Assembly (NCBI RefSeq): GCF_964204645.1
Contig: NC_134031.1
Span: 16,169,807 to 16,233,806, forward strand
Length of the DNA stretch: 64,000 nucleotides
Direction of reading: 5' to 3'
Source of the DNA: Tubulanus polymorphus
Lineage: Eukaryota; Animalia; Nemertea
The notes beneath the pieces are model-generated. The model was not told the origin of the DNA and made no database searches. It was given only the letters and a program-made list of their open reading frames with translations. Numbering within the stretch: position 1 is the stretch's first letter; every line of letters begins with the position of its first letter. The position numbers were made by a program, and so were the translations under genes. Of this stretch, positions 2,302-49,527 are shown piece by piece.

Positions 2302-4225
2302 TTAAGTCGATGTGTTCGATGAAGCTGTTTTGGTTATAAAGTTCGAGTTCACGAAACACATATCAGCCTGCCATCGATACGTTTCACCTTTACCGCGAAA
2401 TGGCACTTTGTTGAGCATATGAAATGGTTCGAATCCCATTTCTGACATCTTGCGAATGTCAGCTGCGTATATTCCCATGTTCATTACCATGTTACCGAAT
2501 ACATGGTACTCGACCAGATATTGCTTGACTCTATTCAGCATACCGTCTGCTAGAATATTGTGTAGAACGGCGAATTCATTACCTTCGATATCGATCTTTA
2601 AAAAGTCGATTACCATCTGAAAGCAGGGAGAATTATCATTAACGATCATTATTACGCAGGCATAAAATCTGTACGCTCAGAATACCGTTCCATTAATTCG
2701 TTTGTATGTAATAAATGAATGGTCCACGATTTGACGAATAGATGTCTCAAATTCATTGTCTTGAAATCGTAATTCAAGCCGCTTATCAAAAAAATATTTC
2801 GTTCGCTTACATTTTCTCGTTTGATCATTTTTAGGATCGACTTCAAAGTGCGAATTTTCCATATTTGATCGGTTCTCACGTATTCATCTTTTCTCGGAAC
2901 GAAACTGTCCGAGTCGGCACCACCAATACCGAGGTCGTAAAACCAGACTTTTTTCGAATGTTTGTGATCAGGTTTTCCCATACTGAAATATGAGGTCATA
3001 TTCAATATACTCGATTCTATGATTATTGCGAGATGCACTCAATCGATCATGTCTACACACACCTGGGGTCAAACGCATACACTTCGCAACCGTATTTCTC
3101 CATCGCATCATCGAACTGCCACAAATTACCAATTCTACAAGAGGTACCATTCGCGTGAGAAGTAATCTAATGAAATCTATTCCCAGTTAATAACAAGACT
3201 TTAAAATATTCGAAAAGAGAATTTCAATTACTTTCAGCACATGAAATATAGCATTTACTGTACTAATGTCTATTTATTAATAGATAATTATATTAGTATA
3301 TTAATACATAATAAGTACCCATCACAATGAATGAAGAAATGTCTCAAAAGTTTATTTAGATATTTCTAATGTTTGAATAAACCTTTGAGACATTTCTTCA
3401 TTTTTGCGGGATTTTACTATATCGATTTATCGCGGATATCGTGAGCTACAACTGATTCATTCGGGATTTGCTGTAGTTTGGAGCAATTTTCAAGTTGATA
3501 AATTCGCGTCGCAAAAAAGACACTTGCCCAAACGAAAGCGCTAAGCAGCCAGGTTTCGGAGAGAATGGTTCATCGTGGCAGCCGAACCAGCTTCCTTCTT
3601 CTTCGCGTATACCATATAAAACGCGTTTCTTACATTTGTAAGTTGGACCCTTTTTCAAATATCTGAAGACATACATGATGTGTAAATTGATCTCTTCGCG
3701 GGTCCTCATTGTTTCACGGGCATTCATTTTTGAAAAAACAATCGAATACTTTACTCACGCTCCTATCAATGCTTCACCTTCCCACCACTTTAAGTTCAAT
3801 TGACTTTGAGAAACTATTTAAAAAATCCACCAAAATGATCATTGTTCACATCAACATAGGCTTATTCAACTCACTAATGAAATCACTATAAATATATACT
3901 CATTCACATCCAAATGGATCCGACGTATTTATCAACAGAATTCTAGGTCTTTATTCGTTCGAAAGCATACTTACTTACATAACGCTACGGAATGAAACTT
4001 ACCCTCCGTTTTAGATGCATTGTTATCCAGGCCTCTGACGAAAACGTAACGAAGTGTCGACTGTTTATTGTATAATTGCTGTTCAAAGGTAATATAGATA
4101 TAGATTAAAAATTCACCGGGATTGAGTATAAAATTATTCCATTAACCTACACATACGTGTATGAGGATGATTACGACAACGACCAAACCGATCACCGCAG
4201 CAATATTCTGATACGAACGATTCAT
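2302..4225 (-). CDS. METTL24-like (Methyltransf_22/FkbM-type) methyltransferase, multi-exon, with an N-terminal signal anchor
   Basis: Exon peptides: MNRSYQNIAAVIGLVVVVIILIH; ..YGIREEEGSWFGCHDEPFSPKPGCLALSFG; ..YGCEVYAFDP; ..FYDLGIGGADSD..WKIRTLKSILKM; ..IDFLKIDIEGNEF..KQYLVEYH. Some internal exon boundaries are uncertain. Confidence 0.8.
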
Positions 4226-6072: not shown

Positions 6073-7771
6073 ATGATGCTTATGCTCGGTAGGTTTTGAG
6101 AAATGACCCTGAAATAATCAAGATGCCTTATAGCCTAACGTTAAATGATGGAACGTTTTCATCTTGTTTGTCTAGATATCCCGTTTCAAGTTTCTCAGGA
6201 AGACTTACAACGATGTTTAGAGTCGAATTTGGAGCTGATCGAGAATATAGTTATAGATGTCGATGAGCCGACGTGGTTGAAATGGCAGGATCGCAGACAA
6301 TCCCGATGTACGTAGTCGCTATACTCTCGTGTAGCTATGGGGGAAAACAGGACCCATAGAAGTCGGCCAAATATAACTCTGAAGTTACTGAACATTAAAA
6401 GTTCCTCACCTAAAGATTATAATGGTTCTAAACGATCTTAGAGATTTGTTTACTTTGTCCTGTTTTCTTCATTCAGTTTTAACTTTTAATTCGGATAGCA
6501 GTTATCTGGCCATTACGATCACATGGTCTCGTTAAGAGAAGAAATATTGGTTGGATTTTGATTAAATCCTTGTAGTAATGCTAAGAGTGAGTGACCTACC
6601 TAGTGCGTTGAATCATGGCTTTAGATAAGCCTAACCCAGTACATTAAATTCAAATGCCATGATCAGGTTCTTACAGATTACAGAAATCAAAAGAATTCAG
6701 GATTTATTTTTCCCCGCAGAAAAATGAAAGAAATCTCACTGATATTGGGGAAAATCAGGGAATTTGAATTTTGGTGTCTTGTTATCGCCAGTGACAAGTA
6801 AGAGCATAAGGAAACAGTCCGCACTGAGAATATTTTATAAATTGATCAGGGAATTTATGGTCTACCAAGTATAGCCTATGGGTGAAGGAAAATAAGGGAA
6901 ATATCAGGGTAATTTGGATTCCCTGTTCTTTTTGTTTGAGCCGTGTACCCGGTATATCCCTCAGTGCATTTTGCATTTTGTTATAGACCAGAACTCGGAT
7001 TCAAACTGAATATCAAATTTTTTCCAGATATGCAGCAGAATGCCATCTCAGATGACCAGATGGGAATGGCTGTTGCCGATGACGACGACGATATATCCTT
7101 CATCAAAGAGGAAAATATCGGTCACGACCAGTACAGCGCCGAAAGCCTACCCTACAACTCGAATCAGAACGCATTCCCGTACGGCAGCACCTCCGGTCAA
7201 ATGATCAGATCTCCGTATAAACAATTCCAGCATCGAAAACGTCGACGCCAGCCGTCGGCGAGCGCGACGAAAAACTCAACCGCGTCTCAAAAACGCCGCA
7301 ATCAAAATTTGTCTCGACAAGCGAAATATAATCCGCAACAGGCGCCGTACGCGTTGCCGCACGACCCAGCGGGCTCGTGGAGCGCGACGGAGGCCGGGGT
7401 ACGCGTACCTCCGTTACACGGGGGCGACACGAGCGGTCAGGGGACGTTTCAAACGGAGCAGACGGCGGTGAAACCGGAGCCGTCGTCGAGTGACGGTCTG
7501 GGCGGCGCCGACGATTACGGCAATTACGACGCGGATGCGCGGCAATCGTACGGGGAAAACCCGGGCGACGATTTCGCGGAAGGCGGCGGCAGGAATTACA
7601 CGGCGGATACGAGCGGTATGAACGACGACGGGTTGTATTTAAAGCGCGAGGACACTGACGGACAGTTGGAACAACGCCAGATGGATCCTCACGCTGAAGA
7701 TGCCACAAACGACGATAGTTTTTTCGCGGTCGATGATTCAATGAATTCTTCCGATGCTCAATCTGGTTCTG
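6073..7771 (+). CDS. Common 5' exons of the zinc-finger-array gene: 6073-6088, 6176-6307 and 7028-7771 (conserved N-terminal module, then an acidic/low-complexity linker with a basic NLS-like HRKRRRQ)
   Basis: ATG ATG CTT ATG CTC G|GTAGG; TCTAG|AT ATC CCG...CGA T|GTACGT; TTTCCAG|AT ATG CAG...GGT TCT G|GTAAG. All junctions are phase 1 and the frame stays open; the paralogue at 1-1030 supports the first two exons. Confidence 0.85.
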
Positions 7772-8952
7772 GTAAGTTTCACGTGAACAATGTCTGGAAT
7801 GTGGTGGTAGCGTGATCTCTTCTTGTTTTCGATGAAAAACAGTTTTCATTTATTTCGTGAAGTGGTCATTGGATGTGTATTATAGAACCCCACAACGTAG
7901 AAGATTTAAAGTGAAAATCTGTTGTACGATATTATGGCTAGAAAGAATGCTTCAGCCATTTCAGAGATTTATTTGAAATGAATATGAACTGCAATGTTAC
8001 CGGTACATTAAAGAAAAGTTGTTCAAGAGGTTACCCGAAACAAGGTCACCCGAAAAGTATCAGTGTAATAGATTTTCAATGTAAATCTTCAATATTGTGG
8101 GTCTTTATGTACAAAACATAGACTGCAACAAGTCTTCGATTGATTTAGTCATTGGATTGTATTCTGCAACCAAAATGATGTATTAGAAGTAAATTTTTCT
8201 CGAAACAAGAAGAAATCAACTTTACAGGTTGAGAATATGAAGATTTAGGGTATCATGTATCAAACTTTGATTTCATGTTATTGTAGAGTAGGAACGGGCA
8301 ATTTTGATAATTATTGGCCTGGTTTCAGTTTAACCGGAGATTTGCTGAAAAAAATTATGCGACGATAGAAGATCGCCGTGATGTAGAAGCTGTGAAAGAA
8401 ATTGATATTTATTGTTTTTCTTTGTCGCAAACTGTATAAGTGTTGTTTTTTGTCACATCTACCGTAGATTAGAATTGTTATTTTGATGAAGCACCGCAAT
8501 TGTCAATTATTCGTAAATGAGGGAGGGGGGTTAGAAAAGAACTGCTGAGTATGATAAGTGGGTAAAAGGCATGTATATCATATAGAGGTATTTTCAAATA
8601 CTTGAATACTGTTTTGCTGAATTCGACAACAAGGCTTTTACTGTGTGACTTAATCCCGAATATGGATGGAGCATTACCGATGCATCATGGTATCGATACA
8701 GAGGATGACTTTAGGTAGAGGATAGTTTTGGTTTTGGTTCTGGATACTGTCTGTTCAACTGGTGGATGAAGCATCTATTTTATGATATGGAACAGGATTT
8801 CCAATTATGGATCGGAAACGTCTTCGTCAATCTAGAACTTACGCCTTTTTGAGTCCATGAGGAATATGACGACACTACCGCCGCGACCGACCCAGTGACT
8901 GGATGGAAGAAACTTTCGTATTGACTGACTCCGATTTTTCTGTCATTTTCAG

Positions 8953-9227
8953 ACTGGTTTGTGACGACGCGACGTAGCGGAATCGGGCAGTCGCAGCGCC
9001 GAAACAGTCGGTCGATTCCGTCTGCCGGAGGTGGCGTCTGTCACACCTGCGGTCGTACGTTCAAATATCGCGGCGATTTAAGGCGTCACATGCGAATACA
9101 CCTGGGAATCCGACCGTACGTTTGTGACGTGTGCGGACAGTCGTTCATTCAGATCGGAACGCTCTATTTACACGCGCAACGCATTCACAATTTAATTCTG
9201 CAGAGAAAACGAAACTCCTCGATTTAA
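8953..9227 (+). CDS. Alternative terminal exon ZF-A (twin C2H2)
   Basis: TTTTCAG acceptor, phase 1; CHTC..HMRIH-LGIRPY-CDVC..HAQRIH; own stop. Confidence 0.85.
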
Positions 9228-9368
9228 TTTCTTTCCGTCGTTCGCACGCGATCGAAACATGAGGCCGGAATCTCGCGGGTTTCGGAGGATTACGAGTCCA
9301 TGGCCGTAGAGATTCTAACACATTCTAAGCTGTCATTTGAACGTCTTTTTTTCTCCCCCTCTTTTCAG

Positions 9369-9625
9369 GGATGCGTCTCTCGACACTCGATGCGGATTCC
9401 GCGAATCCGAAGGAAGCCTATTGTCCCATCTGTCACAGATGTTTTGCCGGCGCGTACCGTCTTAAGATCCACATGCGCGTGCACGTCGGCGTCAAGCCGT
9501 TTCTGTGTAGATTTTGCCAATACAAGTTTTCCGATTACTCGAACTGTAAACGTCACATCAGTCGCAAACACACGTCCGATAAACAGGAGATTCTACAAGC
9601 AGTTGTTCACGTTTACAAACTTTAA
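9369..9625 (+). CDS. Alternative terminal exon ZF-B (twin C2H2)
   Basis: CTTTTCAG|GG ATG, phase 1; CPIC..HMRVH-VGVKPF-CRFC..HISRKH; AATAAA at 10065. Confidence 0.85.
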
Positions 9626-10263
9626 CTCTGCTATATTTCGTTTTCGCTGCAGTTAAACAGGATTTCCCCCCGTAATCGAATGTGATACGAATCCCTCGCT
9701 ATGATTTATAGAAAAGAAGTCACTTTATCCGTGATGTTTTGCGCCTAGGTTTTTTCGTCGCATGGTCACTCGCGTATAACGCCAGTTCGCGGAGTATCGT
9801 ATATGAATTTGATTTGTTCCAGCTAGGGCCTTAATGTTTCATTTACGGAAGATTTTTTTTACTGTTCTATGTAGTGGAACCTCGTTATAAAGACCTCAGA
9901 TATAACGATTTTTTGGTTATAACGAACTAGAATTACATCCCAAATAGTGGATTTCAATGATTTTCTTACTCGATCTACCGAACTATCGGTTCTAGACTTT
10001 CTGGTCCCCGGAAGTTTGTTGTAACGAGGTTCCTCTATAGTATATGATTTGTAGTTACGTGTTCAATAAAAGAATGTATTAATCGAAACGCGTTCTAAGT
10101 CTGAAGTTACTTTTTCGATTATGAGATAAAAGCATTTTGAGGTTTTAAGAGTAATTTTTATTCAGTGTCAGTATTGAGCTGGTTGCGGGTCTAGGGTCGG
10201 AGAATTCTTGTGATACATCATTCTAAGTCGTAATTTCAACAATATTTCTCCCGATCTTTTCAG

Positions 10264-10526
10264 GGTTGCGTCGCGTGCCAGCTCAAACTGCTGCCGGTTC
10301 GGCTAATTCGAAGGAAGTTTTTTGTCCCATTTGTCGCAAATGTTTGGCCAGTACGTACGGACTTAAAATCCACATGCGCGTGCACATCGGCGCTAAGCCG
10401 TTCTGGTGTCGGTTTTGCCAACGCAAGTTCGCCGACTATACGAACTGTAAACGTCACATCAGCCGTCGGCATACAAACGATAAACAGGAGATTCTACGAG
10501 CGATTATTCGCGTTGACAAATTGTAA
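10264..10526 (+). CDS. Alternative terminal exon ZF-C (twin C2H2)
   Basis: TTTTCAG|GG TTG, phase 1; paralogue of ZF-B and ZF-D. Confidence 0.85.
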
Positions 10527-11007
10527 CTTCGATTTTCCAAAAAACGATTTCGCTGCATTTGTGAAGGGGATTTTTCTGAAATTAAAATACCTCTCTGTTA
10601 TCTATAAAACGAGGTCATTTTATCGGTGATATTTTGACCCTAGGATTTGCTACGTATCTTCACTTGCTGCCAAGCGCTAGTTAATGGAATATTGGATGTA
10701 AATTTAGTTTGTTCCAGCTAGAACCTTTAAGTTTCACGTTTCATTTGCACGAAATTTTGTAGTGTGTTTATATAGAATATGATTTATTATTTGTACCCAT
10801 GTGTTCGATGAAAAATATATTAATGAAAAAATTCTAAGTCTTCATTTCACTTTCTGTTTTGAGATAAAATTGCAGATGAGATGTTAGGATAAAAACTTTC
10901 AGAAGAGAGTTCGCATAGTCAGTATTGAGCTGGTAAAGGGTCTAATTTCGGGGAATTCTTACTCATTCCAAGCTGTCGTTTGAACTATATTTTCCCCATC
11001 TTTTCAG

Positions 11008-11270
11008 GGTTGCGTCGCGTGTCAGCTCAAACTGCTGCGGGCTCCGCTAATTCGAAGGAAGTTTATTGTCCCATCTGTCGCAAATGTTTGGCTACTTCGA
11101 AGGGACTTAAGATTCACATGCGCGTGCACATCGGCGCTAAGCCATTCTGGTGTCGATTTTGCCAGCGCAAGTTTTCAGATTATACGAATTGTAAACGTCA
11201 CATCAGCCGTAGGCATACGAACGATAAACAGGAGATTCTACGAGGAGTTATTCGCATCGACAAATTGTAA
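11008..11270 (+). CDS. Alternative terminal exon ZF-D (twin C2H2)
   Basis: TTTTCAG|GG TTG, phase 1; recent duplicate of ZF-C. Confidence 0.85.
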
Positions 11271-11463
11271 CCAGTTCTGGAACTGTTTCTGGCGGATGTT
11301 AAAATGTGGCGAATATCCACGACAGCATCACCCAGCAGGAGTAAATCTTAAATCTTAGTATGAATTGTATCTGTGGGCAGGTCTTATTTCTTCGGAGCTA
11401 TGAGTTTGTACTGTTAGAATTTCCCAATACTGTTAAGCTAAGCTCAGGTCAACTTTAGTAGAC

Positions 11464-11578
11464 CTGGACCCAGTTCCACAGTTGTGTGTTAAGGTTCAAT
11501 TCTGAGTTAACTCATTGAAAATGAAATAACTTTAACTCAAGAGTTAACTCTCACTCACAACTGTGGAACTGGGTCCTG
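11464..11578. mobile_element. Short palindromic MITE (CTGGACCCAGTTCCACAGTT...AACTGTGGAACTGGGTCC); second copy at about 50838-50950
   Basis: Inverted repeat with two dispersed copies in the window. Confidence 0.65.
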
Positions 11579-12576
11579 GTCATCTCGTCGACTTTTTCAT
11601 CGAGAACCTTTTCGACATTAGTGTGCTTACGACCGTGACGACTTGATCGCACGAATCGCAAAGTCAGAACAAATTCTGTTCTTGATGACCCGATCAGATT
11701 GCCGTAGCCAATCGGCAATGAGGTACCCGTCACATTACCTTTAGATTCTGCGATGATCGACTCGTAGTCGACGTGAATGCTCTTATGACGTCGCGACAAA
11801 TGAATCGTCAATCAGCGGTCAGGTGTTTACTACCGTTGTTCTAACCATGAGATGATCGTGTCATTAATCAACCTGATCTTAGCTTTAGTTGTTTCATTTG
11901 ATTACGTGGAAACTCATTCTATTCTTATCGTGATGCAGAACATTAATATGGGCTTCCGAGCTGTTTTTCTAGTGATACTACGGAATAGTTGCTGCGACAA
12001 AGTTTTAAATTGTATTTCGAGTGATTTATATCTTTTTAAATCTAAATGGATTATTTTATTAGAGAGTAGATTGAGGTGACTGTTGGTCTGTTAAATGTTT
12101 CAGAAAGTGACTTATCAGTTGATTTCAGCAGTAAAAAGCTGTTCTAACCAAGAAAACTTTGTAACCACGTAATACCATTCATGAGGCCTTTTTTCTAATT
12201 ACTTAGAGTACGGATCCGCTGACCAGAATTCAACATTCTATTAAAAAAAATCGTTTCATCGATTTCACGTGTTTCATATTATTTTTTTCAAAATTTTCGT
12301 GATATTCGATTCCCATCTTTTGAATTCAATTCCACATAATTTTCAAACCTTCCACGATTTTATGTGGAATATACTGGAATAACATAATAAAAAAATTCAT
12401 TTTCTTCCTGTTTTCTTATGTCTCAAAAAGCAGGTGATAGAAAATTCTTTCTTTATCTTTTACATTCGGCCTGCCATTTTTTTTTCCGTATAAAATCCGT
12501 ACTCCGCGTAATCGCAAAAAAAGGCCTCAATTCTCAAGTCTCCCAATTCTCCTACAGTCGCTTCTTCTACTTTCAG

Positions 12577-12854
12577 TGTGTGCTTCGAACGCGGTTAAAT
12601 CGACGTCGCCTTCAGACGGGAAACGTTGCGATCGTCCGGCGAAATCTTATCCGTGCAATCTTTGCGACAAAATTCTCACGTCCGACTTAGGCTGGAAAAT
12701 CCACACGAACGCGCACGTCGGCGCGCGGCCGTTCTGGTGTAAATATTGCCAGCGTAAATTCTCGACGCGCAGCAATTGCCTGCGACACATCGGTTCTCAA
12801 CACGGGCAGCACGCGGTCACCGACGGCGTGATCGAAGTGAATTTCATTCATTGA
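12577..12854 (+). CDS. Alternative terminal exon ZF-E (twin C2H2)
   Basis: TTTCAG|TG TGT, phase 1; CNLC..HTNAH-VGARPF-CKYC..HIGSQH. Confidence 0.85.
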
Positions 12855-13165
12855 CGCGAGGAGGAAAATGCGTAAAACTGAGGCGCGAATGTGACCGACG
12901 ATAGAGTTAAAACGTGATTTAAGATAAAGTTTTTTTCAGTATTCTTATTTCGAATTGATAAATGCTGTCACCTGATTTTGATTTGTGGAATGGATATGCG
13001 CGGCGTGGCAGAGATTAGTTATTATGTGAAGCAAACAAATTACTGTTGTTTTACGTATTACCGTCATTTTTTTCATTCGCGATGTTGACGCATGACAGCG
13101 AACCCGGGAACTTAGGAATTTAAGGTGATTAAAAACAGTAATCCACAATTTTCGACTACTTTCAG

Positions 13166-13512
13166 CGTACACGCCGTGGCAAGCGAAACAAGAACAGACT
13201 CAAGACTTCAACGCGACATCAACGTCGTCGCAATCGGCGTGTAGATATTGCGGTCAGATGATCGCCGACAGCAAGCTGAAAGCGCACGAGAAATCGCATC
13301 AGCGAACGGTGTTCGAATGCCCGACCTGCGGCCGACGACTGACCTCCAGCAACGGCCTGCAGATTCATATGCGCACGCACAACGGTCACAAACCGTATCG
13401 ATGTAAATTCTGCAAGCAATTGTTCACCGACCGCAGCAACTGTAAAAAGCACATCTACCGACAACACTGTCAGGACAAGGACATCGTCGATAAGGGTTTC
13501 GACGTAGTTTAG
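13166..13512 (+). CDS. Alternative terminal exon ZF-F (short atypical finger plus twin C2H2)
   Basis: TTTCAG|CG TAC, phase 1; CRYC..HEKSH, CPTC..HMRTH-NGHKPY-CKFC..HIYRQH. Confidence 0.85.
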
Positions 13513-14157
13513 ATTTTGAGAACATTGTTAGATTATGTTAGAGTCTTTGTAGGCATATTTAGCCAGTTTCATCGTATATATATATTATATATATATATAT
13601 TTTTCTATAGAGTAGAGGATTAATCAGATTTTTGTTTATAGAATAATGTATTCTTGATGTAATAGTTGTAGATCGTGCTTTCAGATATACGTCTATCTTA
13701 GCGGATTCAGATATGTAAAGAAGTGTATTTTGTTGTTTAATGAATATGGTTAACCTTGCCTAACTAGATGCATTTAACCGGGCTTTCTTTTATTCGGCTG
13801 ATTACAAAAGTTTCAACATTAGCTTGGTATTTTCAAAAATGTTAGTAGCACGTTTTTCACTTTTCGTCATAAACTTGGACGAAATTTTACCCTCTTTCAA
13901 TTGCACTAATTTAAGAATTGCAAGGTTTGCTTTATACAGATATTCACAAGATTTGAGCTTTTCACCCCCGTTTCACTGGCACAAAATGACTGCGGCACGG
14001 AAGTCGTCATTATATGTCGACTCCGGAAAAATCAACACTAGGACGAAATGGTGCAGTTGTGTTATTGGTCGGACCCAAGTGCTCTGTCTCTATCGGTATA
14101 TGAACATGTCTTACTTACTACGTGTACTATCTAAATTATCTATTACCCTAATTTCAG

Positions 14158-14549
14158 GGTCATTGTGGCAACAGAAGAATAAAGAGCGGGCACTCGGCGG
14201 TCCGGACCAAGCGACGGATCATTCCGGCGGAACGCGGGCGCCGCCGGATGTAGACATTAGCGCGATGAAAATGTGTAAATTCTGCTACTTGATGATCGCG
14301 CCGGACGAGTTCAAAAATCACGAGGCGATGCATAAAAGCGTTTTCACGTGTCCGGTGTGCAATAAATCGATGACGACGAACAAAGGTCTCGAAATTCACA
14401 TGCGTTGCCACAACGGCGAAAAGCCGTTCCAGTGTAAGTTCTGCAGCGCGCAGTTCTCCGATTTGAGCAATTGTAAACGCCACATACGCAATCAACACTC
14501 GGCGGATAGCGAAATCATCAAAGCGGGTTTTACGATTCTGAAGTTGTGA
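14158..14549 (+). CDS. Alternative terminal exon ZF-G (short atypical finger plus twin C2H2)
   Basis: ATTTCAG|GG TCA, phase 1; CKFC..HEAMH, CPVC..HMRCH-NGEKPF-CKFC..HIRNQH. Confidence 0.85.
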
Positions 14550-16538
14550 TGTGCACGTATAGAGCTGTTTTTTAGGGAATTTGAACGTTATCGGATCTTG
14601 GTGCATGCTATCTCCGCTGATTGTATAATTCTCACTACTTTCAGGCACTAGTGACAAATTTTGTCTCTTGGAACCAATTCTCAGTAGAGAGAGAGTTAAC
14701 ATAGTTAAATATCCATAAAAGTGGTGTACTAGCAAAATCCATCACTGATTCGTACACCGCACTGCAGTGTAGACGCACTGAAAGGGTTAACAAAAAATAT
14801 TATACCTTAACTGATAGCTGTAGTGTGCACTAGGCTCCAGTATGCGATGCTGCTGCTGCAGTCCTGGAAAATATTCGCACAAGGGAAAATTCATAGTCTT
14901 CATGAAGTTGTGCATAGGTTATACAAAATTACTAATAAAGAATTTTAGAACTAATAAGTCCATTCTAACTTGGCCCTTACCAGGAACAGACCAATTTAGA
15001 ACGACCTAAATCGGACTCGTGTATTGACATTTTGAATCGGCCGTTAGGACTGGTCCACTTTATGTGCAACACTGTGATATTAACTGGAAATAAGAGCATA
15101 TTATCTTTTCGCGCACACGGAGATGGTCCATTCTTAAATTTAGAAGGGACCTAGGTCGGTCATTTTGGTTGGTCTTAATTGGTCTGTTCCTAAAAATGAA
15201 AATATCCAGTTTAACACGGAGTTTTTCCCTGTTTACTACACAAAAGCCAAATGTGGCTTATGCATACTTTATGAATCCGATATGTAAATTGAAGATGTTC
15301 CTGTGTATGACAAGTTATTGCTAAAACAATCAAATTATTCAATGTGCTCATATTTGTTAGAATGAAAAATTGACTGGCGCCTTCGTAATGTGTACCGGGG
15401 TACATTGAATTGATATGCATGAATTGATTTTCTAGTTGTTTGTCTAAATGAATTGAAGGCTGTATTGTTTATCTCATAAAACGTCATGGATTTTGTTCGG
15501 TTTCTGGTTATTCTAACCATGGCTCCTTGTTTCTTAACATCTTTAAAAACGCAATAGAGAGAGTTAAGAGGTTTATTTATTTGATTTCGTTTTCTGTATC
15601 GGAATTTGATATTTTTGAAAATGTGGAAATGATTTCATTTCGATTATGATTTTAAGGATTTTTTAGAGAAATATGATTTTACACTACATATTTTTTGATA
15701 CGCTTGAATTATTTTTGGGATGATGACTTAAATGTGATTGCAACTGAAGTGTAACAAAAAATGTAAAAAGCTACGTAATACCTTGTATGCAGTAGCCATA
15801 GAACCATGGACGTATAAGCTAGTTTTAACCATGAAAGAACTAAAAACATTGAGTTTTCTGCTATTGTTATTCTGTTGACCTTGGTAAAATCGTTATTGGT
15901 TATTGCTCATCAGAAATAGTCAAGCACATCGAGACAGCTTGTTTGAATAAAACATACTTTCATGATAAGTAGCAATAGCAACTACTCTAGGTATCGGTCA
16001 CATATCATTATTGTTGCTGTCATCACTTTGGTCTGAACCTGGTCGTCTGCCATAGTTTAGTCAATAAAATATTCATATCGTTGTATATTAGTACGAATGT
16101 ATGTACAAAGTCTCAGAAAAATAAATACCGCATTTATTGTTAAGAATATATATATATATATACGTATTCTGTTGTCATATTTCTGATTGGAGGTCGCTCA
16201 GTCGTACACAGTCGTTGGGAATCCCTGAGACTTGTCGCATTTATTTGGTATGAAGGTTTTATCAACACAAATGGACAGATATAATCATCAACTGAGGTGT
16301 AAACTAGTTCCAAAGAAACTAGTTGCAAAGAGAAAGGGGGTCTCATTTGCAATTGCCACCGCAATTAATTGATGATATCATACATGTATGAATACAGTAA
16401 ACATTTCTTGCCCGGATCTCGTGGGACCAATAACTTCTAGGTACCGGTGCGTGCGTTCCGGGGCAGTCGGAACAGGCGTGGGTCATTAATGAGAAATGAA
16501 AACTTTGTGACATCGAAGCAAGCGACTCCGGGGTAAAC

Positions 16539-16841
16539 CACAGGCTCTCGTATTTGAAGTTTGGGGGTGAACTGCAGCTTTGATCACCCAGTACCCTAGT
16601 CAGTAACCTGTCTGTGGTTTACTTTCACGATCGGATATTTTCACAAACCACATAATAGGCCCATCCGATTGGTATAAGCCCATCCGATTATAAAAAGCTT
16701 ACCACCCGGGCTTACCACCAATGATTAGGTAACTAACTAACTACCAGTAACCCTGGTATACCATATAAAAAGAATAGTATCAAGGGTTCTGGATGATCTA
16801 AGCTACAGTCCATCCCCAAACTTCAAATACAAGCCCCTGTG
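16539..16841. mobile_element. MITE (CACAGG..CTCGTATTTGAAGTTTGGGGGTGAACT...; inverted end at about 16800-16841) carrying a nested dispersed repeat. A shorter copy lies at about 28094-28229; the nested repeat also occurs at about 60820-61020, 61550-61610 and 62340-62410.
   Basis: Long TIRs and multiple dispersed copies visible in the window. Confidence 0.6.
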
Positions 16842-16944
16842 GGGTAAACGGAGTCTACCGTATAATCATACCTTTTCCGACAAAAATTATATGTAATTTT
16901 ATATAGTCTGTATAAGTAAAGGATTTTAATTGTTATTCTTTCAG

Positions 16945-17171
16945 GTATGGGCAGTGCGTTGAAAGCGGCGTCCTACAATTGTCAGCCACAATTGGTTCTC
17001 ATCTGTCCAGTATGCAATAAAATCTTCCCGAAAAAGTACACGGCCAACTACAAAAAACACTTGCGCATTCACACCGGCGAGAAACCGTACAGCTGTGACG
17101 TCTGCGGCCGAAAGTTCAAAGACGCCAGTAACCGTAACGTGCATCTCAAACGCATGCATAACGCGTGTTAG
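16945..17171 (+). CDS. Alternative terminal exon ZF-H (twin C2H2 with canonical HTGEKPY linker)
   Basis: TTCTTTCAG|GT ATG, phase 1; CPVC..HLRIH-TGEKPY-CDVC..HLKRMH. Confidence 0.85.
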
Positions 17172-18674
17172 TTATTTCATCTTATTGCGCGTACTCGAAA
17201 CAACGATATCTAAATGCAAATTGGAATAGATGTTTAATGTATGGATATTGAAGTTTATCTTAATATGAATGTATGAAATATACAATCCATGTAATGTATT
17301 AGTTGAATAACCACCATCAAACGTGGTGAGCCAGTGGCGTTGGAAGTGCGGCGACTGCAGCGGCAATAATTTACTGAATGACGTTTTTTTCTTTGAATAC
17401 CACATTTTTGAAGAAATTAAGTAAATTCGCCGCGGCAATATTTAGAACCTGTCCAAAATCATTTGGCCGCGGCAATCAAAAATTGCTTCCAACGCCCCTG
17501 TGAACGGATAATAAGGTAAAACCCCGCTACGTACGGATTAAAATTTTTTAGAAAGTCGAGAATTCACTAAGTCAAAAAATTAAAAGAAAACGACGTTTCG
17601 ATCTCACCCAGTAGAGATCATCGTCAGGTGTGAAATTAGATATAAAAACAGTTTTTAAAAACTTTTAATCCGTACATAATGGGTTTTTGTTCTTACTATG
17701 TAATCTATGTTTTTCGGACTTTAAGTTGTTCTTTTATATTGAAGAGGAAAATGCTAGCATGTAGACTACTTTCTTGTCGTCTTACGAAATTAAGTATCTT
17801 GTAACTTGCTGTAAAGTTTTACCGGTATATGTTTTGATATCATTATAGTGTGTCTTATTTTAACGAAATAAACAGTTTTCGTCATTTTAACTTCTTTCGT
17901 TCGGATAGAGCGTGTCGTTTTCTCTGATTCTGGTTCCAGAAACTCAGGCGCATATTATGTATTCCGAATATTCCAACCACAATTGAAATTTAAGTCAATT
18001 TTGTGTCATCTAAAAGAGAATATATATGAAAAATGGCTCCAGTCTCCTTTGTAAGAAAAAACGTATATAATTTGATGATACCCCAGACGGTTTGGAGGAT
18101 TTAGAGCTTATATTCCATATTTTAGATTTAACGTCTGTTATCGGCGCAGAGGGATGCCCCCGTTAACCTTCCTATAATCAATCAAGTTATCAGCAGATAA
18201 TGACTGAACGATTGTTCATCTTTGGAAGAAAAATATAATCCGCTTGCAGCTAAATCAATCGATAAATATCTCACGACCGCGCGATCGTAAATGTGCGAAT
18301 TTTCTCAGTCGTGAAAATCGTCTAATCTAAATCGGCGATAAAAGCGTTGTTTATGGCAATTTAATGATTTTCCGTGTGACGACGATCCTCGGCAGGCGTT
18401 TCTTGACGTAAAACTCCTTAGCGTTCGCGTTTGAAAATCATTGTAATAACAATTAGCGCATCTTGACAGAGCTGTCGTACTGCTGTTAGCTTCTCTAGAC
18501 CGAACATTACCACCATCTCGCGAAATACGTAAATGTTGTGTTACTTTATATCATTTCATGTAGGATTATTTCAAGCCACGTGAGAAATTTCTTTGGAAAT
18601 TAGAATTGAAATTCTATGCGTAATCTGCGAAAATTTGATTTCTTGATCTTTTGGTTTCAATATCTGCGAAAAGT

Positions 18675-41513: not shown

Positions 41514-42515
41514 TTACAAATGTTTCCTCGTTAAGGCGAATAACGCCTTAACCTCGTCTCTATACTTGTCGAACGAAAAAGCGTATATCACGAAGTTTAA
41601 CGCGTAGTTAAAGCAGCTAACGGTCGTCGCGAATGAATTCAAAACCCAGAGAAAATGAGTGACGTCTGGATGTGACCAGCCGTCAAACGCACGCGCCAAA
41701 TGATGGAAAAGTGCAGCCGTGATGTTGTAAGGTGTAATGAATACAAAATAAACCGTTGATACCGCTAACAGATTTATTATACATTTCCTTTCATTTTTGT
41801 CTGATCCAGTTGTTTGCTTTGATTCACTCCACGCGTTTTGGCTTCGCCTGACGCCGATAATGATGAAAATATTCAGCGTCAAAACGGCGATCCACGGAAT
41901 CGTGTGGTTGTACACGTGGCCCTTGAGTCCTAAGGGGACGCGTAACCACACCGGAAGAATTCGACTGTTCCACTCGCAATGAGGGATTTCAGTTTGCGCC
42001 CCGCGTATGATCCCCATCACGGCGGGTAATTCTACGTTTGTGACGAGAGCTACGACGACCAAAACGACGAGGAATCGTTTACGACGGCTCGTAGTCATCG
42101 ACGTGCGACGAAACGGCGCCCAGACGCTGACGCACCGTTCAACCGAAAACGACAGGATGATCCATGCCGATAGCCAAGCGGCGCCCCACCACAAATAGAC
42201 GGTCGTTTTGCAGAGGAAGTTCGTGACGAGAATATGAACGGGCGTGCCGACGACGATCAAAAGATGGTCGAGCCACCATAGAATACCCATAGAGAACAGA
42301 ACGCAGGTATCGGTGCACGCTAACAGAAATAGGTACTGCACGCTGGCGCTGTCGATTCTCCTCCAAAGACGAGGGAAAACGATCAACGAAACGACATTAC
42401 CGAAAATACCGATTACAACCGTAACCGGGTGCACGTATTTGATACAGATTATAAGACCGAATTCAATGGCTGAATATCGGCTGCGCTGATGAAAACTGCT
42501 TCCGTTGCCGAACAT
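41514..42515 (-). CDS. Intronless class A (rhodopsin-like) GPCR, peptide-receptor-like (FMRFamide-receptor-like group), orphan
   Basis: Seven hydrophobic segments; GIFGNVVS (TM1), LFLLACTD (TM2), SVERC (DRY site), TM6 proline, NYALNFVIY (TM7). Confidence 0.9.
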   Translation of the reverse strand: MFGNGSSFHQRSRYSAIEFGLIICIKYVHPVTVVIGIFGNVVSLIVFPRLWRRIDSASVQYLFLLACTDTCVLFSMGILWWLDHLLIVVGTPVHILVTNFLCKTTVYLWWGAAWLSAWIILSFSVERCVSVWAPFRRTSMTTSRRKRFLVVLVVVALVTNVELPAVMGIIRGAQTEIPHCEWNSRILPVWLRVPLGLKGHVYNHTIPWIAVLTLNIFIIIGVRRSQNAWSESKQTTGSDKNERKCIINLLAVSTVYFVFITPYNITAALFHHLARAFDGWSHPDVTHFLWVLNSFATTVSCFNYALNFVIYAFSFDKYRDEVKALFALTRKHL

Positions 42516-44921
42516 GATCAATTATTGAGATACGGTACTCGCTCAGAAAAAATATTTCGGGACATTAACGCGACGTTGTATAACGATTATGTATCAGGAT
42601 GCGCTTTGTCTAATAACATGAAACTGCGAGGCATAATTGACTAATCGGCGCTAATTACAACGAAGAGACTCTCTTGCCTACAAGCAAACGAAGTCACGCG
42701 ACGACGGTACGAAATAACCAAATGGAAATAGCTGGAAACGCTGAAAAGTGAATACTGACCGTAATGATGATCAGACGAAATGTATGAAATCCCAGAGCCC
42801 CTCGTACCATGTTATATAATGTATATAGTAACGACTAATGTAAACGATTTCAAAGAGGCTAGTATAAGATTTGATTGAAGTTTTGCAATAAGAATAAATG
42901 CTCAATCTTATATTTGTGTTGGACACCATATCATCCATGCATCCATGCATCCATCCATGCTAATCATTTTTAAAAATTCGACTTTTAGACTTTTATAGTA
43001 CGTCGAATTTTTAAGGCCAGGGTAAAGCGTGATGCGCAAGCTGTCCAAGTCGTTATTTGCGTTATTCAGTGATGGCTAGTTAGTAGTCAAGCTTCCAGAT
43101 CCTATCTTTCAGAATGATACTGCACATTGTGAGGATTTTATGAAATTATCAGGGTTTGATGGTAACATACATGGCTTCAATTTCAGAAGCGGTACCCATA
43201 CGCTCATCTGGGCCCGTTTTTAAAGATGGCCGCCATTTGTCCAAGCGTATGCTGAATACGATATAAATCACCGATTTCAGCAATCTTTAGTGTCTATTTT
43301 ATGCTTTTGAGAACATTAAAAAACTGGGTTTTCGGACTCGAAAATTCAGCATAAAAACCTGTAGCAGCCATTTTTCAAGATGGCGGCCATTTTTGATTAA
43401 TAACTCAGTCACATTTCCACAATCTTGTTGTTAATATATATAATATAGGCTTCACAACACAAACATTCGCAGGCTCTAAAAATTTCGATTGTTCGACGTA
43501 GAAAATTGTGGACGTTGAGCCATCTAGTGTGTACGGGTAGTTAATGAAGTAGAATTTTCAATTAGTAGAAGGCGACGTGCTGTCGAAGCGTTGCTGCCGA
43601 ATGGACGCAAAAACAGAAACCTGTCAGTATTTGTCGATTAGGCTGTCATTTTTTATCGTTTGTAGTTGTAGCCCCTATATGAACAAAAATATATCCTCAA
43701 CGGGGGAATCCGATATATCATTGTTTTTACATTATAAATTCGTATATGTATTAAAGTTGGTGCTGTTACATTTGGAAAATAATGGAAATATATATATATA
43801 TATATAATGTAAGAAGCCGGTGATTATGTTATGTTATACTCAAGAGTTACACAAGAAAAAATCAACAAAAACAACGAGAAATAATGAAAAATATCACGAC
43901 AAAAAGTAGAAATATCATGAACACGTTATCTATCTATATCTCAAAGTGAGGAGTAATGTAAACGATGCTTTTTTTTCCTCGAAGAGAAATAATTTGTTGA
44001 AGAACCTTATGAAAATTTATGAAAATGTTAGTGTTGTACTACATGGAATATGCGATGAATCTATAGGCAGCTACATGTATATGTAACTTGCTGATGTTAA
44101 TTTACTGTAATATAGTGAACGTACAGATTTAAGATGAAAGGGATGCATTCCAAATGACATTGGATTTTAAAACTGTACTTTTAAGTTTTTCAGATCGCTA
44201 TCAAATGCTACGATGGATTTGGTCAAGTACAAGAACACATAGAATGGACATGAGATGTTGAATCGACAGAATTGTTCATCTATCAATTTTGATTACTCTA
44301 GGGTTTTTATGTACCTTATAAAGACCGAAATATTCTTACAATGACATACATATAAACAGACACCTATGATAGACTATATTGTATAATATAGAAAAGCTAG
44401 TTCCTTATGGGTCCATGAATCTAAGGGGGAGCTGAAGCGTCCTGGGGACACCTTTGTAAAAACAATATTTTTTCGAAGTTCTCAATCAGAGTAATTTCAG
44501 TCGGAATAAACTAAGTTGTCTTATGTAGTTAAAAGTGATTGAGGAAATGAAAAATGTCCCCAGGATTCTTCCGTACGAATCAGATATATTCAAGTTATTT
44601 TTGTTCCAACTTGACTATATTTTTGTCTCAAATATTATCTAAAAAGTAGTCACCTTGGTATGAAAATCTGCAGTCATATGGAGGTGTGTATGCATTTTAC
44701 CAAAAATTCATATTATGAATTTTTGATTTTACATACATTTCAAATAGTCAAATTCAATTTTTAATCCGAGTTTCCTCTTTGAGTTTCCAATCTTTTAAGC
44801 TTTTGAAAATTGCTGCAATGACAAAAACAATATTGCAGCATTCGGCAATCGAAATATCCACCTGTCGTATAAATTTTAGGTATAGAATACATATTTTACA
44901 TCCGTGTATACGTTTTTTCAG

Positions 44922-47172
44922 TGCGACGGCGATATCTACTGCATAGAATAGAATATATTCTATTGCACACGAAAGTACATTTGCTTAGAGCCAAAAGACA
45001 TTAAAAAATGAATGTCAATACAATATCAGGACAATATCAGAAGCAAAATTATGTTGTATTTTGGATAGGCAATAGCCAAGGCTAATATCTCTCCAAGATT
45101 ACACTTCACAGTTAATGTGTGACAAAAAATGACAAAGCAATGTTATTCAAAATATTTGAGACCTCTTCGTATAAATAAGGCAAGCTTTCGGAGTTTTACA
45201 TCTGATGATCTAAATAAATCTACAAATTTATGTTATTGTGGGTTATCTACAAAGTACAAGCTAAAAAGGTCTCGACGGAAATTGGCAAAAAACGGACAAA
45301 CAGATATGAAATGAAATTCGTCATAGACAACTCGCATATTACACGTTGTGCAAAGTCTGTGCACACGTGGGACACGGTTATACCTCCCAGTTTCAATAGG
45401 GAAGCGGTGGTTCGAACATCGAAATAATAATAATAATAAATTTATTTCCACAATAAAATTACAACATGTCATAAAGAGATATACAAATATGAAATGTTTT
45501 AATATAATGTGGAGGAGATTAGATGAAGCCAATGAACGCTTATAAAATCTCTAATCCCCTAGCATACACCGATTCACTCAACTCATACACACATGCAGTC
45601 GTACACCTTCACCCAACATGCACCCACACACGTAGTCACTCAGGCGGTCAATCACACTATCTTTCATTCACTCTTACAATCTGGTAATAGATGACAGATA
45701 CAGACAGATTAATTACAAATTCATTAGATACAATTTAAGTTTTCTTTTGAAAGTATCTATACACGACAGTTGTTTTAAAATCTACAAAGGCTTATCCTTA
45801 AATCGTCTGACAATTGAGTAAGATAAGTTTCAAATCCCCATTCCGTTTTGAATATCTTATATAAATCAGCAATACTAGAAATGCTACACTGATCCCTCCA
45901 ATATTGAATGAATTGGTCCTTTAATCGTAGTGACAGACTTTGCGCTACATAATCGGGGTTATGCGGGGTTTGGTCGTACCAAAAATGTCCAAGGCCGTTT
46001 GTTATAAGCGTGTTTTGGATGAAAACTAACAAGGAACCACATTCTGCAGACTTTAGTATAACATGCGATATTTTAGATGATAATTTATTGCTATTACGCA
46101 GTTTAGCCCAGAACTTCATTAATCTAATTTTTATAATAATTTCAAGTGGAAAACGCCCTATCTCTCCATACGCAAAAATGGTAGGAGTTGACTCCTTTAG
46201 CTTCCAAAGGTACTTAACAAATTTCAATATGACGATATTGTGAGTACGAACACTCCACAAACGGAAGCTAATATTAAATTATTGATACAAAGGGCACGAA
46301 AAAGCGGACTTTCGACTTTTTCGAGCATATTGTGAAGCACGCCGTAAAAACGGACGAGATTACCTATGTAATATGAATTAGTGTTTTTATCTCCTTTATA
46401 TGAGTACATGAATATTCCAGCTGATTTTTACCTCCCCGAACTCTTGAATTATTCAATAAACCAAATCGACTAAAAATCCTAAAATTGGTCTCTTTTACAA
46501 AATTCGATTGTCGTGAAGTCTGCATCCAGTGCATACACCTATTACTTTAAGGTGCATAGTTTATGAGTACCATATACCAACTTGAAGTTGAACCAACCAT
46601 AAGAACCATATACGATAAACCAATGTATAACACTGCATTCTTTGTTTTTCCCCAGACCTGGCTGAGTGTTACTGACGATTTTGCATTTGCAGAGACGTCA
46701 AAACGACTACCATCAGTTTAAAAGTACTGGCGGTTAGGTTCTTGTAGACCTGCGTTTGACAACAGTTCATGTAAACAAGATGATAAATTGAGGTTTACCT
46801 CGGTATCTTAGCAATGATTACGTTCAGGGATCATATTTTCCTATACAAATTAATTTCATCTATCAAAATCTATGGACAAAACAAATGCATGCTTCAAGGG
46901 CATATTTAACACTGATGGCATCCGAGGTCACCGTAAGCAAAATGATGCAACGGCACTGTTGATATGTATTTTCATTTCAAATTTTTTCTTGTTAACAAAA
47001 CACGAGGGATTATTGTTTAAACCTTCAGGAATGCCTGGGTGGCTGAAGGTAACGATGCTTAAATAACCTATCGGACCGCCGCCAAATCATCGATGTTAAG
47101 TGCATCGGCAATTGCGGAATGTGCCGCCCGAACGCTCCTTTGAAACTCGTCCGTAACCGAGAATCTCCTTAA
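44922..47172 (+). pseudogene. Decayed PAN-GON pseudogene E, interrupted by LINE fragments
   Basis: Microexon remnant CDGDIYCIE* at 44922; exon-4 remnant TDDFAFAETSKRLP with a stop at about 46656-46720; exon-5 remnant WVAEGNDA*..KCIGNCGMCRPNAPLKL. Confidence 0.7.
45150..46260 (-). mobile_element. Non-LTR retrotransposon (CR1/L2-group-like) 3' ORF2 fragments, split by another LINE-like 3' tail at about 45420-45775
   Basis: YGEIGRFPL..RLMKFW..DQFIQYW..FETYL..RISLCRF / RCSNHRFPIETGRY..RLCTTC..DEFHFISVCP; (TAA)n tract at about 45423-45438. Confidence 0.8.
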
Positions 47173-48079
47173 AGGCTGGAACTGAGCACAGGAATTCCAG
47201 CCAATTAGAGACCGAATATACATAGTACCGTTAGCATCATTAGTTTGATGTCACAAACATTCAATTTCAAGTAGTTTCAAACGCAAACCGAACCCAGGAA
47301 GAAAGACACTCTAAATATTTGGATGGATATATGAAAGCTGTGGGTACTGGAGTGTGTAATGGGTAGTGTAGTGTGATCTGTGTGCATTTGTGGCCAGGAC
47401 ACAGATCACATTCACCAAGAACCTTAGTGTCTGATGTACCACAGTGGTTACACAGGATCGTAGAGGAACGTAGATACACTGTGGAGACAGCCACACTGCC
47501 AGGACTGGGTGAAAGATCACATTGTTCAATGGGGTTTGGTCCAGGACTCGCGAGATTTTCAACAACACGGAAGTAACGTGTAATAAATGATGACTTGAAT
47601 TGCATGACTTCCTACCACACCCCTCATTATTGTTGGAAAACTAAACGTTCGGCACTGATTAAAAATTAGTAATAACATTTTAGAAATGGCCAGAATTTTA
47701 ACTTAGGTTCTATCTCATTTCTATTTTACAATTGCGATTGGTATGATTTTTTTTAAACGGCCGTTAAGGCTTCGTGTTTCGGCTGCAATTCACTGCAAAT
47801 AGTTACGCAACTATGCACATTTCAGTGTTTTTGGCAGCTGTACACTCAATCGGCACCGTTCGTGACTAGCTTCGCTGCGGAATTATCATTAATTAACATC
47901 GCCATATCACATCATCAACTTATATTGTGCCTTAAAACCCTAACAGCCGAAATAATTGAAATGCACACACGATTTCTATCATTGAAAATTGAGAGAGTGG
48001 CCATGTTTGTGTTTGCTGCTTCGCGTAAATCCCGCGCGGTGGCGCAACCGCGCGGAGTGGGGATCGTGGAAAACCGACT

Positions 48080-49527
48080 TTGTCATTTATAGAAAAACTA
48101 AATTTGAATCGTGATCAGGATATTGATACTTTACTGAATTTATTCATAATACTATACGCAGATGATACAGTTATTCTTGCTGAGGATGCGAAATCTCTTC
48201 AGCTACACTTAGATACCTTATTTGAATATTGCGCGGCTAATGGTCTCACTGTTAACTCAGAGAAAACTAAAGTACTAGTATTTGCGCGAAGTAAATCCCG
48301 GATAAAAACGATTTCGAAATTTATGTTTGGTGATCAAGAGTTAGAGGTAGTTGAAGATTATGTTTATCTCGGAGTAAAATTCAATTGGAATGGTAACTTT
48401 GCTAAGGCAAAAAGTATCTTTACGATAAAGCTATGAGAGCTATGTTTTCGATCGTTCAAAAAGGCAGACGTTTGAAATTTCCCATAGATGTTATGTTTAA
48501 ATTATTTGATACGTGTGTTGCTCCAATAGCCATGTATGGGTGTGAGATCTGGGGATACGAAAATCTTGATTTATTAGAAAATATTCATTGCTTCTTCTGT
48601 AAAATCTTAATGAAAGTGACGAAATATTCTCGCAACTTACAAGTTTTATCAGAGCTAGGACGTTACCCCTTGAATTTAGATGTTAGACGCAGGATGATTA
48701 ACTTTTGGGTTAAAACAGTATCTGGAAAGCAAACCAAACTTAATTCAATACTCTATAAAATATCTTTCAATTTATTTTTAAGGGATAAATTTAAGAGCCC
48801 TTGGTTATCATATATAAAGAAAACGTTTGATGACTGTGGTTTGTCCTGCATTTGGACGCAGCAATTCACGACTAACAGTAAATCTTTTTCAAAACGAATA
48901 AAACAGATACTCCGTGACCAGCACCTTCAAGAAACTGTATCTGCCATAAATACTAATCCGATATACACTAACTTTAGGCAATATAAAAATGATATTAGGT
49001 TAGAGAAGTATATAATAGAACTTGGTGATGACTTAGGAACTAGTTTATTTGAATTCAGGGTCGGGTCCTATATTTTACCTGTGAACAAATTTTCAAACCT
49101 TCATTTAGACAGAGCCGATAGAATATGCCCCACTTGTAATACTTTAGGTGACGAATCCCATTTTCTGTTTGACTGTACCTTACTTAACGAACAACGCAAA
49201 AACTTTTTGAATTTGAATACCTTAAATACCCTTGATATTCTGAAAAACCCAACGGTCAACTTAGCTAAATTCATTAAGACCGGCTTAGATGTATATAGAT
49301 CCCTCCAATAGTATATATAGTATTGTAAATAGTTGATGTATATAATAGTATATATAGTATTGTAAATAGTTGATGTATATATATATTTCGTTACGTTTTC
49401 ATTCTCTAAATTTTAATCACTTCAGTGTTGTTTTGTAAATATTTGTATATACATGTGTAATAATTTTCCTCCATATACCATGGAAATGGTTGGAGTGTAA
49501 ATAAATCGTAATCGTAATCGTAATCGG
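48080..49527 (+). mobile_element. 5'-truncated LINE (CR1/L2-group-like): RT C-terminal half, CCHC domain, 3' UTR and (AATCGT)n tail
   Basis: LYADD, EKTK, YVYLG, MYGCEIWG, ELGRYPL, RICPTC..GDESHFLFDC; a single frameshift in the A-run near 48409-48413; AATAAA followed by TCGTAA repeats at about 49499-49527. Confidence 0.9.

Follow-up and report, generated by a model that had tools for sequence, protein, structure and literature searches.

The stretch of DNA analysed here, a 64-kb window from the genome of the palaeonemertean ribbon worm Tubulanus polymorphus (Nemertea), carries on its + strand, between positions 6073 and 17171 of the window (the coordinates used throughout), what is very probably one protein-coding gene: a set of constant exons followed by a row of alternative, self-terminating zinc-finger (ZF) ends. 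In a database protein search, the translation of its constant exon was 100% identical to three RefSeq proteins of this species, namely isoforms X5, X2 and X1 of the uncharacterized protein LOC141908711, which are labelled P0001, P0002 and P0003, respectively. An earlier account of the window based on its letters alone, hereafter the sequence-only reading, had assigned the array to a non-insect animal, and these identical entries bear it out. The same reading had expected automated annotation to break the locus up or to retain a single isoform, and here it was mistaken: RefSeq holds a single gene with at least five isoforms (X1 to X5). As far as we found, the gene is present in RefSeq as these unnamed isoform models and is otherwise undescribed in the literature we searched, where no account of an array of this kind from Nemertea or Spiralia turned up.

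The constant part of LOC141908711 comprises three coding exons, and all introns of the gene are in phase 1. The coding part of exon 1 (6073–6088), at which all three RefSeq proteins start, runs from the start codon through five residues plus one base and closes with the phase-1 donor G|GTAGGT; upstream of it lies 5' untranslated region (UTR). Exon 2 (6176–6307) is in phase 1 at both its borders and encodes a family-specific helical domain of 42 residues at the N-terminus of the protein (about residues 6–49 of P0001–P0003). Exon 3 (7028–7771) is a constant region of 247 codons, corresponding to residues 51–297 of all three isoforms, and is single-copy in the genome assembly. Its product is acidic (pI 4.4) and of low complexity but includes a basic cluster, RKRRR...KRR, resembling a nuclear localisation signal, and the whole region of about 250 residues is probably disordered. 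The exon ends in the shared donor TCTG|GTAAGT, with 7771 as its last base and one base carried over into the next exon, which is precisely the phase-1 donor that the sequence-only reading had described. An exon-by-exon comparison of isoforms X1, X2 and X5 (427, 412 and 382 residues) found that they share 6073–6087, a junction codon, 6178–6306, a second junction codon, 7030–7770 and a third junction codon, after which each of them carries exactly one of the downstream ZF units.

These units are eight in number, and we refer to them in their order along the gene as ends 1 to 8. All of their acceptors (8953, 9369, 10264, 11008, 12577, 13166, 14158 and 16945) are preceded by a pyrimidine-rich tract ending in TTCAG, and all of them open a phase-1 frame that encodes a pair of C2H2 fingers, the second of which has H-x4-H spacing in every case, and that runs into a stop of its own. 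In all these respects the sequence-only reading proved accurate for eight of eight segments, but its statement that the segments are in frame only in phase 1 needs qualification: all eight are open with fingers in phase 1, and the fingers are read in that phase only, but the ends at 9369, 10264 and 11008 are also open in phase 0, over 95–121 amino acids (aa).

The individual ends are variations on this plan. End 1 (8953–9227; 91 aa) has two fingers, a TAA stop and a match to Pfam zf-C2H2 at E 2e-12, and the next acceptor is just 141 nucleotides (nt) away. End 2 (9369–9625; 85 aa) has an AATAAA downstream at 10065 and is the C-terminus of isoform X5, while end 3 (10264–10526; 87 aa) has an ATTAAA at 10581. 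End 4 (11008–11270; 87 aa) is a young duplicate of end 3; it lay outside the Pfam scan, and its DNA is 90% identical to that of the exon at 10264. End 5 (12577–12854; 92 aa) consists of an intact frame with two fingers. Ends 6 (13166–13512; 115 aa) and 7 (14158–14549; 130 aa, with an AATAAA at 14934), the C-termini of isoforms X2 and X1, respectively, each add to the finger pair an extra upstream C2H2-like knuckle of the form C-x2-C-x11-H-x3-H. End 8 (16945–17171; 75 aa, with an AATAAA at 17867) is the most divergent of the set, with a TGEKPY linker and a first finger spaced C-x2-C-x14-H-x3-H.

Pfam C2H2 models match all seven of the exons scanned, those of ends 3 and 8 among them (E 2e-12 to 3e-6), and the ZF profile resembles solved C2H2–DNA complexes only generically. 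A six-frame scan of both strands over the whole 64 kb confined C2H2 fingers to these eight places, all of them on the + strand. The exons also stand out by composition, with a G+C content of 47–56% versus 33–38% in most of the intervening sequence. Downstream of six of the eight ends there is an AATAAA or ATTAAA, and the three AATAAA motifs given above confirm the earlier remark that this hexamer follows several of them; for ends 1 and 6 neither motif occurs before the next acceptor.

Four public runs match the stretch, in addition to one older possible RNA run of the species, and the contigs of runs X2–X5 were placed on positions 7300–13299 of the window, which leaves the ends at 14158 and 16945 outside. 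Within this interval, contigs of run X2 contain exact GT..AG joints from 7771 to 8953, to 9369, to 10264 and to 13166, that is, to ends 1, 2, 3 and 6, and all four hit acceptors that had been predicted beforehand. Record 1 of the same run, a contig of 1,598 nt, terminates exactly at 7771, and the depth of run X2 is zero over 7900–8499 of the intron that follows (intron 1). Since about 720 nt of record 1 precede exon 2, the transcript would start at or before about 5367, provided that exon 1 is unbroken. Runs X3 and X4, which come from the same sample as run X2, cross 7771, 8953 and 10264 unspliced and without joints, and hence behave like DNA; from run X5, the possible RNA run of this species from 2015, nothing matched the interval. 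Given that the constant exon is single-copy in the assembly, the joints do not stem from retrocopies. As tandem duplicates, the exons lend little statistical weight to their shared phase alone; it is the RNA joints that take the pattern beyond chance.

Taken with the three RefSeq isoforms and their different ends, the four joints from one donor support what the sequence-only reading had proposed, namely that a constant region is spliced to alternative ZF exons. Ends 1, 2, 3, 6 and 7 (8953, 9369, 10264, 13166 and 14158), at least five of the eight, are in use. Judging from isoform lengths, RefSeq isoforms X3 and X4 could be those with ends 1 and 3 (388 and 384 residues).

Several points nevertheless weigh against reading the locus as a single gene with eight working ends. 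The kind of run X2 is not on record, and that it is RNA-seq is read from its behaviour. Its joints come from assembled contigs with just 27–29 letters on the constant side, as one would expect if the assembly graph forks at the exon end that they share, and they carry no strand, allele of origin, abundance or full-length connectivity. Run X2 also covers 8526–8873 inside intron 1, at a depth of about 9, with the rest of the intron uncovered; this unexplained signal may stem from an exon missing from the annotation, from a different transcript or from a retained piece. As for the individual ends, no joint to 11008 is listed in run X2, whose depth there is about zero (0 over 11100–11299, most of the exon), and none to 12577 despite low cover at 12645–12885. 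The support for the end at 14158 comes entirely from RefSeq, and the end at 16945, with neither RNA nor RefSeq behind it, could be dead or a separate exon. The expectation of at least eight isoforms, to be seen as junctions from 7771 to each of the eight acceptors, was hence borne out in part: five ends are supported and four of the junctions were found, whereas 11008, 12577 and 16945 are without support.

It is possible, though we lean against it, that the gene makes five isoforms and not eight, the ends at 11008, 12577 and 16945 being decaying or never-used duplicates. Apart from the missing joints, such a view gains from the fact that the constant-exon search returned no RefSeq isoform with any of these three ends, and from the position of 16945, the most divergent unit, 2.4 kb past the previous end and behind repeat-like sequence. 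On the other hand, all three units are intact in their phase-1 frame, in both fingers and in their stop, each follows a good acceptor, and the case against them is drawn from one RNA-like run of one sample. For 11008 there is, moreover, a selective argument. Ends 3 and 4 have diverged by 0.41 at synonymous sites (dS) and by 0.05 at nonsynonymous sites (dN), and the resulting ratio of 0.13 indicates purifying selection on both copies since their duplication, so that both appear to have been maintained even though end 4 is unseen in RNA.

The same pair of exons also offers a view of how the ends diverge. Of the nine residues at which ends 3 and 4 differ, three belong to the recognition helix of finger 1 (positions -1, +1 and +2). 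Across ends 2–7, finger 2 hardly varies at its contact residues (D-S/T-N-R/K), while finger 1 does, a pattern that fits isoforms sharing one DNA subsite and differing in the other. Ends 2–7 are one another's best matches in the whole genome, and therefore arose by local tandem duplication; in ends 2, 3 and 4, identity of 72–78% extends across the 100 nt upstream of the acceptors. Ends 1 and 8 stand further off: the two-finger exons closest to them (38–47% identical) belong to other arrays, which lie on contig 8 at 11.4–11.65 Mb and on contig 7 at 17.68–17.70 Mb. Word-based protein searches found no kin in other species, nor any sign that the end at 16945 is used: the last ZF exon matched nothing, the ZF7 region matched only itself, and the constant exon matched only the three isoforms of the gene.

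The gene belongs to a large family defined by the domain of exon 2, which has 42 matches in the T. polymorphus genome, many of them clustered on contig 8 at 11.4–11.65 Mb. It occurs in 27 database proteins, always at the extreme N-terminus (residues 4–80, mostly 7–48) and in nearly all of them ahead of C2H2 fingers. Family alignments reveal a small set of invariant residues (one C, one D, W-x2-W and one R), and AlphaFold2, run with the family alignment, predicts three helices with a mean predicted local distance difference test (pLDDT) score of 81. Known domains offered no counterpart: Pfam placed no family on exons 2 and 3, and none on 18 family N-termini at E <= 10; the domain profile had no match among PDB sequences, nor did the AlphaFold2 model in a Foldseek search of the PDB; the VIA wide fold search returned generic helical matches only (best Z 4.4); and a search of the ESM Atlas gave no usable match. 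A dimer prediction with two copies of the N-terminal 60 residues returned no verdict, neither for nor against binding. The nine weakest real matches to the domain, which were those looked up rather than the top ones, were all from T. polymorphus. By its position and its behaviour in the family, the domain of exon 2 is a new zinc-finger-associated domain.

The layout of the gene recurs in its paralogs (RefSeq P0004–P0028): they, too, have this domain at the extreme N-terminus, start with a short coding exon and carry their two-finger exons in rows. Compared with these paralogous arrays, the present one is small; of its eight ends, six were duplicated locally and have no copies elsewhere, and it comes with direct RNA joints. 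Some of the RefSeq models in the family look different, for instance P0017 (contig 7, 17685699–17709005) and P0009–P0011 (in the contig 8 cluster), where 11–23 fingers are strung in series over many two-finger exons; these are either genuinely different genes or sets of alternative ends chained in error. A further paralog stands head to head with LOC141908711 on the minus strand of the window, with its start codon and short first coding exon at 1030–1018 and its domain exon, 52% identical to the domain of LOC141908711, at 124–1. Its RefSeq product, P0015 (534 aa), has a homeodomain at residues 390–445 and not zinc fingers.

How does this gene compare with known systems of the same kind? Drosophila lola likewise has a common 5' coding region and many alternative 3' exons, to which that region is spliced one at a time; every such exon brings its own C2H2 pair and stop, and in both genes the isoforms differ solely in the DNA-binding end. 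The joining in lola is partly by trans-splicing. In the nemertean gene, whose array is the smaller of the two, only cis joints were seen, in contigs that show neither strand nor allele of origin. In fruitless, broad, tramtrack and mod(mdg4), too, the isoforms have their N-terminus in common and alternative 3' exons swap the C-terminal DNA-binding module; a second C2H2 finger of the H-x4-H type is frequent in these genes, and mod(mdg4) uses FLYWCH ends and trans-splicing. The resemblance stops at the constant part, which in lola is a TTK-type BTB domain and in LOC141908711 a 42-residue helical domain without BTB signal; because no TTK-type BTB domain was found, LOC141908711 falls outside the lola family. 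The lola/fruitless-style array of the sequence-only reading thus stands as regards the shared 5' region joined to alternative two-finger 3' exons, but it lacks the BTB domain: the gene is lola-like in layout and is not a member of the TTK-group BTB-ZF genes.

A different kind of likeness is with KRAB, SCAN, ZAD and BTB genes, where a short N-terminal domain also heads a large, clustered and lineage-restricted expansion of C2H2 proteins (about 42 genomic copies here). None of these domains is related to that of Tubulanus in sequence or fold, and the fingers of such genes are usually serial in one exon, not placed in alternative terminal exons.

One could still suppose that LOC141908711 is a true but highly diverged homologue of the arthropod TTK-group BTB-ZF genes, with the N-terminal domain as the remnant of a BTB domain, and the shared layout, the two-finger module and the H-x4-H spacing of its second finger all speak in this direction. 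We consider this very improbable, given that no BTB signal appeared in any of the 18 family N-termini even at the permissive threshold, that the domain is a mere 42 residues in three helices without a fold match, and that it was found in T. polymorphus proteins only, among the matches looked up. Furthermore, TTK-type BTB domains have been reported from arthropods only (Bonchuk et al. 2024, PMC11426971); fruitless, broad, tramtrack and mod(mdg4) are arthropod proteins of this TTK group, without the domain of LOC141908711, and in lola 17 of the 20 isoforms carry different fingers (PMC11426971). The most economical reading, and the most likely one, is that a lola-like design on a lineage-specific zinc-finger-associated domain represents convergence.

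In LOC141908711, a single donor facing many acceptors, with no donors downstream of them, suffices to make the ends mutually exclusive. The sole donor after the constant part (7771, phase 1) is joined to one of the row of acceptors, and the acceptor chosen defines the last exon, because no ZF unit has a usable downstream donor: the phase-1 GT sites in the units lie within the fingers, and none past finger 2 is donor-like. Whatever follows the stop of the chosen end, downstream units included, is then 3' UTR, and since no exon junction lies past the stop, established knowledge suggests that nonsense-mediated decay should stay untriggered. The contigs of run X2 pass straight through the stops and tile 8952–10796 without a gap across ends 1–3, one of them being continuous over 8952–9397 and the RNA contigs ending near 10796. 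For this reason, ends 1–3 appear to form one composite terminal region, entered through alternative 3' splice sites, and not a set of separately polyadenylated exons; contigs cannot show RNA 3' ends, but the three probably share 3' ends near 10.8 kb instead of having their own poly(A) sites. The ends at 11008, 12577 and 16945 may be used in other tissues or stages.

At the protein level, each isoform would be a nuclear DNA-binding factor, with finger 2 predicted to read the common subsite and finger 1 the isoform-specific one. The N-terminal domain may stand in the role of a BTB, ZAD, SCAN or KRAB domain, as a protein–protein contact or effector module; by analogy with these, its function could be oligomerisation or cofactor recruitment.

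Two other ways of reading the locus are hardly credible. If each ZF unit were a small gene driven by a promoter of its own, with the joints arising rarely, by read-through or as chimeras, the run X2 cover just upstream of the first ZF unit and a Met at the second codon of ends 2 and 8 would find a place, but the four exact joints leave one donor at contig depths of the same order as those of the exons, ends 1, 3, 4 and 5 are not stand-alone genes, because they have no in-frame Met ahead of their fingers, the RefSeq models are isoforms of one gene, and the layout is repeated in paralogs with the same N-terminal domain. Nor do we give any real credence to the units being cassette exons spliced in series into a long multi-finger protein, on the pattern of paralog models P0009–P0011 and P0017 with their chains of up to 23 fingers: every unit here has a stop, from which the sequence-only reading had argued that the ends cannot be joined in series, no good phase-1 donor lies past finger 2, the run X2 contigs read through the stops with no joint starting inside a ZF unit, and the three RefSeq isoforms have one unit each.

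The window contains a number of other features. Just downstream of end 4, at 11461–11581, is a foldback element with inverted arms of 50 nt that are 82% complementary and 21 nt apart, probably a miniature inverted-repeat transposable element (MITE). In the public runs, the contig depth summed over this element exceeds that of the flanking sequence by a factor of hundreds to thousands, which marks it as a very abundant repeat. A G+C-rich segment with inverted repeats at 16530–16850, just upstream of the acceptor of end 8, is probably another foldback transposon, and short repeats akin to it occur near 180–230, 640–680 and 14750–14790. Between the two divergent paralogs, at 2305–3038 (to about 4250) on the minus strand, there are open frames that resemble exons of an unrelated gene, which on the strength of one short motif we take to be possibly an FkbM-type methyltransferase. 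Further along, 24743–55829 is occupied by tandem copies of small secreted-looking proteins of about 111–118 aa whose cysteines follow a conserved pattern; a second open frame, also repeated, accompanies every copy. An open reading frame resembling a seven-helix receptor (41514–42521, minus strand) and reverse-transcriptase-like fragments (45775–49311) are, like these tandem copies, unrelated to the array.

Our results invite a broader, and at this point speculative, picture of the family, which we consider unlikely. The family would be nemertean-specific and comprise about 40 genes, and its new N-terminal domain would have independently evolved end swapping of the lola type. Tandem duplication would keep renewing the ends, and change would centre on the DNA contacts of finger 1, as expected of a fast-evolving recognition repertoire. 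Such a repertoire, built from alternative exons and not from whole genes, could serve either as a combinatorial transcription-factor code via mixed oligomers or as a defence against mobile DNA like that of KRAB-ZFPs.

What is new in this study is direct RNA evidence for several ends of one gene, together with an exact match to RefSeq isoforms. A caution for annotation follows from the family as a whole, namely that the models of some paralogs, with serial fingers, may be wrong. Swapping of ends by alternative terminal exons is familiar from the TTK-type BTB genes of arthropods, as a speciality of theirs. The present gene shows this design in a spiralian, on an unrelated N-terminal domain, supported by RNA and recurring across a large gene family, and it is on these grounds that we regard the architecture as likely convergent. 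The family thus brings a new zinc-finger-associated domain for characterisation and, with it, a second independent system in which to ask why such a design evolves.

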